Shown here piece after piece: positions 7,391 through 62,816 of a DNA stretch of 64,000 nucleotides. A program made the position numbers and the translations under genes. Source of the DNA: Podarcis melisellensis (taxonomy: Eukaryota); the NCBI GenBank assembly GCA_964234715.1, contig OZ174277.1; one strand, given 5' to 3'. Under the pieces are notes generated by a model. It was given only the letters and a program-made list of their open reading frames with translations, had not been told where the DNA came from and searched no databases. Positions within the stretch are counted from its first letter, which is position 1, and each line of letters begins with the position of its first letter.

Positions 7391-7615
7391 CAGTGGTACC
7401 TCAGGTTACAGACGCTTCAGGTTACAGACTCCGCTAACCCAGAAATAGTACCTCGGGTTAAGAACTTTGCTTCAGGATGAGAACAGAAATCGCACAGCAG
7501 TGGTGCGGCAGCAGCGGGAGGCCCCATTAGCTAAAGTGGTCTTCAGGTTAAGAACAGTTTCAGGTTAAGAACGGACCTCCAGAATGAATTAAGTACTTAA
7601 CCTGAGGTACCACTG
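7391..7615. mobile_element. Tc1/mariner (pogo/Tigger-like) MITE, family A
   Basis: TIR CAGTGGTACCTCAGGTTA / TAACCTGAGGTACCACTG; TA flanks on both sides; highly similar to other copies in the window. Confidence 0.9.
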
Positions 7616-11282: not shown

Positions 11283-11524
11283 CAGTGGCACCTCAGGTTA
11301 AGAACTTAATTTGTTCTCGAGGTCCGCTCTTAACCTGAAACTGCTCTTAACCTGAAGCACCACTTTAGCTAATGGGGCCTCACACCACTGCTGTGCCGCC
11401 GGAGCACAATTTCTGTTCTCATCCTGAAGCAAAGTTTTTAACCTGGGGTACTATTTCTGGGTTAGCGGAGTCTGCAACCCGAAGCGTCTGTAACCTGAAG
11501 CGTATGTAACCCGAGGTACCACTG
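11283..11524. mobile_element. Tc1/pogo MITE family A, opposite orientation to the 7391 copy
   Basis: TIRs CAGTGGCACCTCAGG / CCGAGGTACCACTG; TA flanks. Confidence 0.9.
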
Positions 11525-30023: not shown

Positions 30024-30258
30024 TTACAGATAGGTAGCCGTGTTGGTCTGCCATAGTCAAAACAAAAAAAATTCTTCCAGTAGCACCTTAAAGACCAACT
30101 AAGTTAGTTCTTGGTATGAGTTTTCGTGTGCATGCACACTAAGGTGTATCTTCAGATACAGTGTATCTGAAGAAGTGTGCATGCACACGAAAGCTCATAC
30201 CAAGAACTAACTTAGTTGGTCTTTAAGGTGCTACTGGAAGAATTTTTTTTGTTTTGAC
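30024..30258. mobile_element. Penelope-like element terminal fragments in inverted arrangement
   Basis: 85-bp inverted arms (30056-30140 / 30174-30258, one mismatch). 14-bp direct flank CAGGGCATAACCAG at 30010-30023 and 30259-30272. gtagcaccttaaagaccaac motif that I associate with reptile PLEs. Confidence 0.8.
30163..30200 (+). ncRNA. Minimal type-I hammerhead ribozyme motif, PLE-associated
   Basis: GTAT-CTGAAGA-AGTGTGCATGCACAC-GAA-AGCT-C-ATAC: core boxes CUGAnGA and GAAA, stem II hairpin, palindromic AGCU stem III, stem I GUAU/AUAC. Confidence 0.7.
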
Positions 30259-30975: not shown

Positions 30976-32349
30976 GGCACCTTAAGCATAGGTTATGGGC
31001 GCAACAATGGAATGTCTAGGCCCACTTTTTTATAACAAGGATACAAAGCAGAAAATGAATGAACTGCAGCTAAAATCTTATATTCATTTTTCACATGGTC
31101 TAGTCCTCATCTGAAGACTGCAAAAAAAGCCAAAGCCATGCTTCCCCTGCCCGCCCCACTAATATTCTTAAAAGAGGGTCTCTTCTCCAGTCTTCAGAGA
31201 GTGGCTGGAAGTGGGGAGGCAGAAAAAGGTCCTCCTTTTCTTCCACTCTGCAGTTTCAATCTGAAACCTTAGGTGCAGTACTGTGTCCAGAGCTCAGAAA
31301 TGGCTCTCGCTAATGAAATTCCTTGTCGCAAAACGCGCCTAGAACAATGGGAGTTTCGAACACTGGCTTTAAGATAGCAGCCCAAATGCCTCTTCTTAAG
31401 CAATGTATATGGATTAGCTTGAAAAATGACCTCTTTACAATTACCGTATAGTGGGAGTAATTTCTACAAGCAGACCAAAGGAGGGGTAACAGCACCAAAG
31501 CCAATACTTTTCAGATTGGAAAAAAATAACAACTTGCAATGCTTATGACTGCCTCATGAGTTGTTCTTCAGTGTAGTTTGTAAATTTATCCAGAGAAGGA
31601 ACCCTCTCTCCCTGCCCAGTTCCCTCCCAGCTGATCATTTACCTGCCCTAGAAGTAATAGCAACAATAGTAATAAATTTCTGGAGGCCTCTCTCCCTGAT
31701 ATCTGGACTCTGAAAATGTTATGACAGTGTTCCAAGAGTGAGAGGCCATTATGCACTCACTTCAACAAAACTAAGTTTTACATCAGCTCTAGAAGATGCT
31801 CGACCAGTGTTTCCCAAACTTGGGTCTCCAGCTGTTTCTGAAGCACAACTCCCATCATCCCTAGCCAGCAGGACCAGTGGTCATGGATGATGGGAACTGT
31901 AGTCCAAAGACAACTGGAGACCCAAGTTTGAACTCTGAGCTTCAACTCTGGACAACCTGGAGGGAAAGAGAGGCCCAAATTTAGAGAATAGTTGTTAAAT
32001 ATGTCTGTCTCTCTGCCGGCACCATTCATATTTAAAACTTGACAAATTCTGGCCCATGTTATTTAACATCTTCTGCATTGAACGGGAAGAATAATTCAAG
32101 GTGTTCATTGTCATCTATATGCAGGTGACATGTAGCACTTTTAAACTTTTCAACCTAATAGAAAGGAAGCTGTTGAGGTTCTGAACTGAAACCTGGAGAA
32201 ATTAATGAGCTGGATGAGCACTAAGAAACTGAAGATGAATCCACACAAGACACACATGCTCCTGATCAGGAGGGAGATGGCATTGGAACAAGAATTCTGC
32301 CTGGCTTGAATGAGAATGCACACACATAAACACATCTTGAAAACTCAGG

Positions 32350-37225: not shown

Positions 37226-37361
37226 CAGGCATAGGCAAACTCCAGCCCTCCAGATGTTTGGGACTACAATTCCCATCATCCCTGACCACTGGTCCTGTTG
37301 GCTAGGGATGATGGGAATTGTAGTCCCAAACATCAGGAGGACTGGAGTTTGCCTATGCCTA
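37226..37361. mobile_element. Palindromic hAT MITE, well-preserved copy
   Basis: ~55-bp inverted arms CAGGCATAGGCAAACTCCAG.. / ..CTGGAGTTTGCCTATGCCT; TSD ccttaggg / ctttaggg. Confidence 0.85.
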
Positions 37362-43400: not shown

Positions 43401-43432
43401 AATAATTCAGAGGGGGCCAATAAGAATATGCA

Positions 43433-43560
43433 AAGCATGAGACTCTAAATCTCAGGGTCGTGGGTTCAAGCCCCACATTGGGCAAAAGATTCCTGCATTG
43501 CAGGGGGCGGACTAGATGACCCTGATGGTCCCTTCCAACTCTATAATTCAATGATTCTAT
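43433..43560 (+). mobile_element. SINE with tRNA-Lys-like head (5' eroded) and CR1-derived tail
   Basis: AGCATGAGACTCTAAATCTCAGGGTCGTGGGTTCAAGCCCCACATTGGGC resembles tRNA-Lys(CTT). Tail agattcctgcattgcagggg..ggactagatgacc..tcccttccaactct..atgattctat. Confidence 0.82.
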
Positions 43561-44017
43561 AACCCTCCTAAGATGTATAAGAAAATATGGCCCAAGTCAT
43601 TAGGTGGTACAATGCAGGCAGAGGCAGAGCTAGCTGCTCCAGCACCCGGAGTGGCCCGCAGGGGTGGGGCTAGCTGCCTGCGGGGGTACACCGCCGCCGG
43701 GCGTCCCAGGGGATGCACTGCAACGGTGCATGTCCCGGGGGGGGGGGCTGCCTGCAGCGATGTCACTCCCCCTCAGGGATGGCACTCGGGGCAGACTGCC
43801 CCAATCACCCCCACCTTTCTCCACTACTGAACACAGGTATGAGCATATATCCTGGCCATGGGATTTCTCATTTTCCATGCAATTGTGAATGGTTGTTGTA
43901 TTTACTATGTGCATGAACATCAGCTGATTCACAACAGCTGTCAGCTTAGAAATTTGTGGTCACAAATCTTCAAAGTCCAGTTAGGTATACCACAGCTCTC
44001 TGCTGCAATCATGTCTA

Positions 44018-45940: not shown

Positions 45941-46062
45941 GTCCAGTAGCACCTTAGAGACCAACTAAGTTTGTTCTTGGTATGAGCTTTTGTGTGTGGA
46001 CAATTTATTTATTTTTTATATATATTTCTACTGTGTCAGACCAACTCAGCTACCTACCTGAA
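45941..46062. mobile_element. Penelope-like fragment, same family as 30024-30258
   Basis: tccagtagcaccttagagaccaactaagtttgttcttggtatgagctt plus inverted cagaccaac..gctaccta.ctg. Confidence 0.65.
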
Positions 46063-46259
46063 CCTATCTCTAGATTAGGTAGAGAGTTAGGAGAAAGCAC
46101 TATTAAAAGATTAATCCTGTCCTACAGAAATTTGCTTTTAAAAAGCTTCATACATTTAATTGAACTCACTTCTTAAGGCACACAAAATGCTGCTACTACT
46201 AATAGAGAGCAGGCAGTTACTGAATCAAACTACGAAAAGCAGTTTACACTGTTTCTATA

Positions 46260-46613
46260 CAGTGGTACCTCAGGTTACATACGCTTCAGGTTAGACTCCG
46301 CTAACCCAGAAATAGTGCTTCAGGTTAAGAACTTTGCTTCAGGGAGCCAGCTCAGCCCAGCGGTCCCATCGAGCAGAGCATTAGCTTAGATCCCCTAATC
46401 GCTTCCAGCGGTTTGAGATCCGCGGGCGCTGCCTGGCTTTTTTTTTTTTTAAAAAAAAGAACTTTGCTTCAGGATGAGAACAGAAATCGTGCTCCAGTGG
46501 TGCGGCGGCAGCAGGAAGCCCCATTAGCTAAAGTGGTGCTTCAGGTTAAGAACAGTTTCAGGTTAAGTACGGACATCTGGAACGAATTAAGTACTTAACC
46601 TGAGGTACCACTG
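46260..46613. mobile_element. Tc1/pogo MITE family A, interrupted by a retroposed insert
   Basis: Complete TIRs and TA flanks; colinear with 7391-7615 except for the insert at 46344-46456 and its TSD. Confidence 0.9.
46344..46456 (+). pseudogene. Vault RNA (vtRNA) retrocopy
   Basis: 5' AGCCAGCTCAGCCCAGCGG..TCGA (A-box-like) and 3' GGTTTGAGATCCGCGGGCGCT.CCTGGCTTTT match the conserved vtRNA ends. Terminal stem AGCCAG/CTGGCT; T13 then A tail; 17-bp TSD AAGAACTTTGCTTCAGG. Confidence 0.85.
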
Positions 46614-47720
46614 TACATACATAAAACTGCTACATTCAAAGGGCGCAGGAAAACTTGTAAGATCCAAAACTTGAAGGAAGTTCATTTTGAAAGCTATCTT
46701 GTGCACATGAACATAAACACACAATAAGCAAAAATAAAAGTATACTTGATGAGATGAACACAATGGAATGTTAGATACCCTTGTCCAGCTAGATCTCAAT
46801 TTTGTTCGTTTAACCTGCACTGTTTGGCTGGCGCCATAAACAATATTTAGATATAACTTTATGCTTCCCAACAGATGCCACTTTCCATTTGATTATTTTC
46901 AGTTAAGGAAGTGCAAGAAAGATTATAAAAATCAATGAAGAACTTATGCAAGTTTACACATAAGGCAAGCAAGTCATGCTCAGTGCACATCTCGACAAAT
47001 TTACAAATATCCCTTATGTTGTGGATTAGGCTGTAATCCTTACCCCACTTTCCAGTGAGTAAGTAGCATTTACGTCTGAGCAGACTTTGTTAGGACTCTG
47101 CATCAAAGGCTTTTGAAAAAAAGAGGAGTACAATTACTGTGCAGAACTACAACTCAAAAATGCAGACTATGCAACTGTAACTTCATAAGATGCTTTCAGT
47201 GATACACACGATACAATATACAATTTTGTGACTAGCTTGAGGGAAATGGGGATGGGGTTAAGTAATTAATTTATGTCTGTAGCCATATCTGTAACTGTTA
47301 TAACAAAGCAAACATATGCCTCCATTTCACCTTTGCTGTGTGGGTGGGGGGATACTGAAGACAGTTTCACCCACATACAGGATACTTAACACAAAACAAC
47401 AGATGTGCAATAATCACAAATGTCCATTCATTTCCTTTATGTCAGCAAATACAAGCAGTTGCTAATTAAGAATCTCTATCTATTGGATACAAAAGGAAGT
47501 TTACACATTTCCCTGGTCATTTTGAAATAGAAGATGGAGACAATAGAAAATGTCACAGGAAGAGAGCAATCTGCTTCCCTGCAACTACCATGTCTTAGCG
47601 AAGTTATCTTTTCCCTTAAAACTGTTTTACACTGACTAAGGAAGAACAACTACAATAAAATACTAACTGCAAAAATGTAAGATCAGAACAGTTAGGAGCT
47701 GTACAATTCCGTCTTGCCTT

Positions 47721-51373: not shown

Positions 51374-51545
51374 CAGTGGTACCTCGGGTTACATACGCTT
51401 CAGGTTACAGATGCTTCAGGTTACAGACTCCGCTAACCCAGAAATAGTACCTTGGGTTAAGAACTTTGCTTCAGGATGAGAACAGAAATAGTGTGGTGGC
51501 GGTGCGGCAGAAGCGGGAGGCCCCATTAGCTAAAGTGGTGCTTCA
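51374..51545. mobile_element. Tc1/pogo MITE family A, truncated
   Basis: TA|CAGTGGTACCTCGGG..., colinear with the 7391 copy; right TIR missing. Confidence 0.85.
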
Positions 51546-60049: not shown

Positions 60050-60100
60050 TTTCAACTATACTTTTTGTTAAATGGCAGAATAGAAATGCTGTAAATAATA

Positions 60101-60310
60101 CCTCTGGCACCTCTGGTTACAAACTTAATTCATTTCGGTAGTCCATTCTTAACCTGAGGTACCACCTTAGCTAATGGGGCCTCCTGCTGCCGCTGCGCCG
60201 CCGGCACACAGTTTCTGTTCTCATCCTGAGGTAAAGTTCTTAACCCAAGGTACTACTTCCGGGTTAGCGGAGTCTGTAACCCGAAGTGTTTGTAACCTGA
60301 GGTACCACTG
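60101..60310. mobile_element. Tc1/pogo MITE family A, diverged
   Basis: Colinear with the 62597 copy; right TIR GAGGTACCACTG. Confidence 0.8.
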
Positions 60311-62596: not shown

Positions 62597-62816
62597 CAGT
62601 GGTACCTCAGGTTAAGTACTTAATTCGTTCCTGAGGTCCGTTCTTAACCTGAAACTGTTCTTAACCTGAAGCACCACTTTAGCTAATGGGGCCTCCTGCC
62701 GCACCGCCATAGCACGATTTCTGTTCTCATCCTGAAGCAAAGTTCTTAACCTGAAGCACTATTTCTGGGTTAGCGGAGTCCGTAACCTGAAGCGTATGTA
62801 ACCTGAGGTACCACTG
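62597..62816. mobile_element. Tc1/pogo MITE family A
   Basis: Perfect TIR CAGTGGTACCTCAGGTTA; TA flanks. Confidence 0.9.

Follow-up and report, generated by a model that had tools for sequence, protein, structure and literature searches.

The insert and its host MITE

The locus consists of a MITE copy, flanked by TA dinucleotides at 46258-59 and 46614-15, which carries a nested insert of 113 nt (46344-46456) located between two perfect 17-bp copies of AAGAACTTTGCTTCAGG. The window, i.e., the whole 64-kb stretch of DNA that was analysed, has no N. The features of the locus, and the family members of the host element, are as follows:

46260-46613, + strand: host MITE, TA-flanked and Tc1/mariner-like, with TIRs CAGTGGTACCTCAGGTTA... 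(TIR matches and six-copy alignment)
46327-46343, + strand: left copy of the target-site duplication (TSD), equal to 46457-46473 and single in five sister MITE copies
46344-46437, + strand: vault RNA body of 94 nt, beginning at the first transcribed base and stopping just before the T run (RF00006)
46352-46363, + strand: box A-like internal Pol III element TCAGCCCAGCGG, aligned to UUAGCucAGcGG of the Rfam consensus
46410-46421, + strand: box B-like element GGTTTGAGATCC, aligned to GGUucGAgACCC of the Rfam consensus
46438-46450, + strand: T13 run, corresponding to the Pol III terminator/U-tail of the RNA template (UUUU is the end of the Rfam model)
46451-46456, + strand: short A tail, A6 (A8 when the first two TSD bases are counted)
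46457-46473, + strand: right TSD copy, equal to the left copy at 46327-46343
MITE family copies in the window: 7391-7615, 11283-11524, 46260-46613, 51374-~51560, ~60100-60310 and 62597-62816

The host MITE, which measures 224 bp without the nested insert, is one of at least six family copies in the 64 kb, and its terminal repeat returned 15 matches in the window against 0.05 expected. The 17-mer AAGAACTTTGCTTCAGG is itself part of the MITE consensus (7 matches against 0.04 expected). In a MAFFT alignment of the six host-MITE copies of the window, all five of the others were found to possess one unbroken 17-mer and to be devoid of the insert. The 17-bp duplication, whose two copies (46327-46343 and 46457-46473) are identical at 17 of 17 bases, thus represents a TSD rather than a chance repeat. 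Some copies of the family carry an internal duplication of the first 16-bp unit, while the one at 51374 is cut short on the right.

The insertion site reads GGTT|AAGAAC, and resembles the TT|AAAA endonuclease target. The boundaries of the insert are those of an RNA, extending from position 1 of the Rfam model through the terminator U run and the terminal A's, with parental flanks absent. The usual terminal U run of Pol III transcripts comprises four to five residues, and the T13 run is accordingly longer. The observed/expected CpG ratio of the insert is 0.76, whereas that of the window is 0.25. A previous, sequence-only reading of this DNA had described a 113-nt insert flanked by a perfect 17-bp duplication, which agrees with the present data in both coordinates and letters; the T13 run (46438-46450) and short A tail (46451-46456) that it placed at a TT|AAGA site, as well as the CpGs that it considered to be kept, were likewise recovered. 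Insertion in the antisense orientation was also considered and was rejected, since it would give no 3' A run and would involve a nick site, CAGG|ATGA, that is not T-rich.

Vault RNA identity, copy number and age

A search of all of Rfam by means of Infernal returned a match of 46344-46443 to the Vault family (RF00006), with a score of 61.7 bits (gathering score 34) and an E value of 1.7e-11. This match spans positions 1-99 of the 99 positions of the model and is not truncated, the first base of the insert corresponding to model position 1, and the alignment reaches into the T run, of which it takes in the first 6 T. The conserved 5' part, which includes the box A-like element, and the conserved 3' part, with the box B-like element followed by CCGCGGGCGCUG..., are aligned with high posterior probability, and the weak match is confined to the variable centre, as is usual for vault RNAs. 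Furthermore, the structure line of the RF00006 alignment has the outer helices paired, with non-standard pairs marked solely in the innermost helix, and the MFE fold (-37.9 kcal/mol, z -2.15) retains the terminal stem. A tRNA-derived false positive was rejected on the basis that no RF00005 match is present at the insert even at E<=1, and at this same threshold cmscan returned neither a tRNA nor any other competing Rfam family at the insert. As judged from the covariance model, the vault RNA identity of the insert is secure, and the vtRNA assignment of the sequence-only reading, together with its statement that the terminal stem is kept, is upheld by this full-length RF00006 match.

The box B-like element GGTTTGAGATCC exhibits a T in place of the C of the tRNA-type consensus GGTTCGA. 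No variant at this T is listed in the contigs of four public runs (X1, X4, X7 and X10), and the T is therefore probably a feature of the family and not the result of decay of this particular copy.

Functional vault RNA genes possess upstream promoter elements and occupy a syntenic position between ZMAT2 and the protocadherin cluster. At the present locus, the sequence upstream of the vault body is that of the MITE up to the TSD, with neither the upstream promoter nor the synteny of a vault gene, which indicates that this copy is not a native vault gene locus.

The abundance of vault sequences was assessed from contigs of the same four runs, which represent three related lizard organisms (A, B and C) and which were aligned to 46000-46900. 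The depth of the single-copy flanks is ~84-108 in X1, 9.6 in X4, 25 in X7 and 14.5 in X10, while the total depth at position 46376 is 385, 58, 110 and 83, respectively; this equates to ~4-6 times the single-copy level, where summed contig depth is to be read as an order of magnitude for vault copies at >=90% identity and not as a true copy number. Two bins inside the vault sequence reach at most 8-11 times the single-copy level in X1. By contrast with the vault core, the MITE bins exhibit a summed contig depth of 10^6-10^7, or ~10^4-10^5 times single copy, across the four runs and three organisms, so that this measure would have revealed a high-copy vault family. Though an order of magnitude, the depth is considered enough to reject a family of SINE size. 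Within the 64-kb window, no second vault match was returned by cmscan at E<=1.

At least three variants are common to the organisms, namely 46373 G>T, 46376 G>A and a 1-nt deletion at 46383, all of which are located in the variable centre, and the A at 46376 is the majority letter in every run. Low depth combined with variants that are shared among organisms up to 5% apart points to a small gene family rather than to a recent burst of retroposition. The retrocopy is thus, on the evidence of depth and shared variants, one of a small family of vault RNAs, with ~4-6 copy equivalents at >=90% identity, that related lizards have in common. A candidate for the parent is found in a 1363-nt contig of X10 (record 10), the last 83 nt of which correspond to 46344-46426 with 2 differences, while its 1280 nt upstream of the vault part do not fit the MITE. 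This contig, which is the sole G-type contig at 46376 in X10, represents a different vault locus. An exact 28-mer of the vault 5' part returned no match in metagenome contigs.

The contigs also bear on the age of both elements. In organism B, which is ~5% different in the unique flanks, a contig (X7 record 25) joins 46257 to 46614 in the form ...TTTCTA|TACATA..., representing an exact empty site with a single TA. This suggests that the MITE inserted after the split between organisms A and B, precise excision in B being the less likely alternative, and that transposition of the MITE family went on beyond that split. This contig of organism B also has a 13-nt insertion behind 46166. In organism C (0-2% different) and in a second sample of organism A, the MITE ends adjoin the same unique flanks (records 9, 16 and 24), and the contig records that place MITE ends beside unique flanks in organisms A and C are, in full, 1, 7, 9, 16 and 24.

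The vault insert is, by these comparisons, younger than the MITE, because the sister copies represent empty sites and because the MITE itself is missing at the orthologous site of organism B; this is the order that the sequence-only reading had put forward. The perfect TSD and the undecayed CpGs (0.76 versus 0.25) are further signs of the youth of the insert. When 31-mers of the insert and its TSDs were sampled, only the three runs of one sample, S1, were found to contain 7-8 of the 11, while all other runs, including those of another sample labelled organism A, contain at most 5 of 11, which is about the number expected from words that lie wholly inside 46344-46426. This suggests that the junctions between insert and MITE exist only in sample S1, which may be the source of the assembly, although the assembled contigs from which this was read are better evidence of presence than of absence. 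The G at 46376, which is the letter of the window, has a depth of 157 in X1 (~1.5-1.9 times single copy), and of 11.1 in X4 and 13.2 in X10 (~1 times single copy). The retrocopy may accordingly be restricted to the lineage from which the sequenced individual comes, or it may be polymorphic. The locus thereby provides a dated lineage marker in relative terms (the organism B split, followed by MITE insertion and then by vault insertion), and a possible presence/absence polymorphism.

Probable retroposition of a vault RNA and alternative readings

The reading that we favour, to which a probability of roughly 85% is assigned, is that a full-length vault RNA gave rise to the insert as a single processed retrocopy of very recent origin. 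The combination of a full-length vault RNA, the T13/A6 end, the TT|AAGA site and the TSD indicates L1-type target-primed reverse transcription (TPRT), and the hallmarks of this process to which the sequence-only reading had pointed (17-bp TSD, 3' A run and TT|AAGA site) are all present. It is proposed that a Pol III vault transcript, extending from its first base to its U-rich end and bearing a short 3' oligo(A), would have been taken in trans by the endonuclease/reverse transcriptase of an L1-type LINE. The bottom strand of the MITE copy would have been nicked at 5'-...GTTCTT|AA-3', upon which the T-rich 3'-OH would have primed on the A tail and the whole RNA would have been copied, while staggered cleavage of the second strand 17 bp away would have generated the duplication. 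Since the parental upstream promoter is missing, the retrocopy would most likely be a pseudogene with little or no transcription.

Certain aspects of the insert fit this mechanism less readily. For an insertion by L1 that is still young, its A tail of 6-8 A is very short; the reverse transcriptase of L1 normally requires poly(A) in its template, and a Pol III RNA ending in U's would have had to gain its A's. None of the U6 pseudogenes found in Anolis was of the poly(A) type, the copies being LINE/SINE chimeras or 3'-truncated (PMC4476161), and an A-tailed full-length Pol III retrocopy is thus at least not the common lizard pattern; by analogy, this retroposition route may be rare in lizards. 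A Pfam scan of the eight largest ORFs of the window detected no reverse transcriptase or endonuclease, and no LINE partner was identified in the window. An event which resembles L1 TPRT, but which would have been performed by a non-L1 reverse transcriptase (of another lizard LINE clade or of retroviral origin) or have occurred at the DNA level, was also weighed. The short A tail and long U run are atypical of L1, several LINE clades are active in lizard genomes, and the Anolis U6 pseudogenes are chimeras with L2 or SINE2 and not of the poly(A) type (PMC4476161). Nevertheless, the 17-bp TSD, the TT|AAGA nick site and the terminal A run constitute the signature of L1, whereas L2/CR1-type insertions have TSDs of 1-9 bp and the LINE's own 3' repeat (PMC4476161), neither of which is seen at the insert, and the exact RNA ends speak against a DNA-level copy. 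This alternative is consequently regarded as very improbable.

A second question is whether the insert represents something more than a processed pseudogene. The sequence-only reading had raised the possibility of a vault-headed SINE-like family, whose multiple members would spread by means of their A and B boxes and the L1 machinery. Re-transcription and re-mobilisation are possible in principle, as the A and B boxes, terminator and A tail are intact; the vault core is moreover multi-copy (~4-6 times), and unitigs of organism B break exactly at 46344 (record 26), which implies several copies with a common 5' end and different upstream flanks. However, the ~4-6-fold depth is alike in three organisms, one of which does not have the host MITE at the site, and at least three variants are shared, a pattern that corresponds to an old small gene family and not to a recent burst. 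Furthermore, there is one vault copy in 64 kb, a LINE-derived tail is absent and a short A run is found instead, and our search of the literature found no paper describing a vault-derived SINE. The claim of such a family was therefore not sustained, given a vault core at ~4-6 times against ~10^4-10^5 times for the MITE and the absence of a second copy from the window: a parent with few copies amounts to an ordinary processed pseudogene, and the existence of the family is, of all the alternatives, the one to which we give least credence. SINEs with heads derived from small RNAs (tRNA, 7SL, 5S or snRNA) likewise combine an internal Pol III promoter with a 3' end that is usable by a LINE, but, unlike them, the vault insert exhibits no amplification to high copy number, no LINE-derived or composite body and no dispersed family.

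It is likewise conceivable, though unlikely, that the retrocopy functions as a new vault RNA gene and adds a paralogue to the lizard's vault RNA complement, its transcription by Pol III relying on the internal boxes together with chance upstream sequence of the MITE. Such a role is compatible with the retroposition mechanism, and the full-length structure, the family-like boxes A and B and the strong T13 terminator are all intact, while the CpGs have not decayed. This intactness, however, is expected from youth alone, and vault genes depend on upstream elements (TATA, PSE/CRE-like), whereas the upstream sequence of the retrocopy is that of the MITE; human vault pseudogenes are also without the proximal CRE-like element (PMC7058938). 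In addition, none of the listed runs that contain the stretch is recorded as RNA, although small RNAs are easily missed.

A processed retrocopy, which remains the preferred reading, has clear counterparts. The human genome contains two annotated vault pseudogenes at non-syntenic sites, without the conserved proximal CRE-like upstream element (PMC7058938), and a 2023 report describes a vault RNA retrocopy in humans, found by retroSeeker, which has poly(A) and perfect TSDs and is ascribed to L1 (PMC11727581). VTRNA2-2P, VTRNA3-1P and the retroSeeker retrocopy resemble the lizard copy in their non-syntenic site, perfect TSDs, A tail and lack of the parental upstream promoter. In contrast to these human retrocopies, the lizard one is nested in a lineage-specific MITE that supplies its own empty-site controls, is apparently very recent and possibly polymorphic, and has a 13-T run before its 6-8 A. 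Retropseudogenes of Y RNA, U6 and 7SL represent a similar case, in that small Pol III RNAs have been mobilised in trans by LINE machinery to give RNA-length copies with TSDs (Perreault et al. 2005, as cited in PMC11727581; Doucet et al. 2015, PMC4476161). Those families number hundreds to thousands of copies in mammals, whereas the lizard vault sequences amount to a handful. The retropseudogenes of tRNAs are a further well-known parallel. The lizard insert is thus a clean case of a known kind of processed pseudogene and does not mark the beginning of a new SINE family; what sets it apart is its youth, the empty-site controls that come with it and its T13+A6 end.

With regard to this end, we tentatively raise a more specific scenario, which is on balance doubtful, whereby T13+A6 would preserve in the genome the 3' tailing that the template RNA had undergone, and the insertion would be so recent as to be still polymorphic in the species. 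Four to five templated U's and ~8 untemplated U's, added by surveillance tailing of the TUT4/7 type, would make up the 13, and oligoadenylation of the U-tailed vault RNA and its capture by L1 would have followed. In humans, vault RNAs undergo uridylation by TUT4/7 and decay by DIS3L2, and CLIP typically reveals oligo(U) tails of 6-8 nt (PMC5069555, PMC5137419). By analogy with the human data, an oligouridylation origin of T13 is plausible, and a long parental T run, slippage of the reverse transcriptase and later replication slippage are equally open as sources. If the tailing scenario were true, present-day wall lizards would have an L1 that still mobilises tailed Pol III RNAs, and the 3' ends of RNAs could be read from retrocopies of this kind as from a natural archive.

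The significance of the locus, provided that the retroposition reading holds, is that the LINE machinery of a lizard is capable of retroposing an entire small Pol III RNA in trans and has done so very recently. The insert also preserves one full-length squamate vault RNA sequence with its 3' end, and offers a small clue on the U- and A-tailing of vault RNA; it reveals no new SINE origin.

Other elements of the window

Several further elements were observed in the window. The region 43415-43541 comprises a tRNA-like head (RF00005, 37.1 bits; ARAGORN calls no tRNA) and a short spacer, followed by GGACTAGATGACC...CCTTCCAACTC, a motif that occurs once in the window, and from its sequence this region resembles a SINE copy of tRNA origin rather than a tRNA gene. 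Just downstream of this SINE-like element, 43600-43790 is GC-rich, with a G9 run and many CpGs, in a window that is otherwise CpG-poor with 41% GC.

Near-perfect palindromes at 37231-37356 and 31812-31936 match mir-5408 on both strands, with 66/65 and 37/28 bits, respectively, all of which are below the gathering score of 90; these look like hairpin-forming MITE copies and not dedicated miRNA genes. An almost perfect inverted repeat of ~185 nt at 30066-30250, positioned between A and T runs, probably represents a further hairpin of the MITE type; both of its strands give sub-threshold matches to MIR1222 and mir-466. Finally, on the minus strand (538-1236), the end of a 232-aa ORF weakly matches positions 1-25 of Pfam RhoGEF (E 3.4e-4; 21.3 bits, under the cut-off of 27.6). 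This ORF may represent an exon from a gene of the RhoGEF family, in which case the region would lie within or close to that gene.
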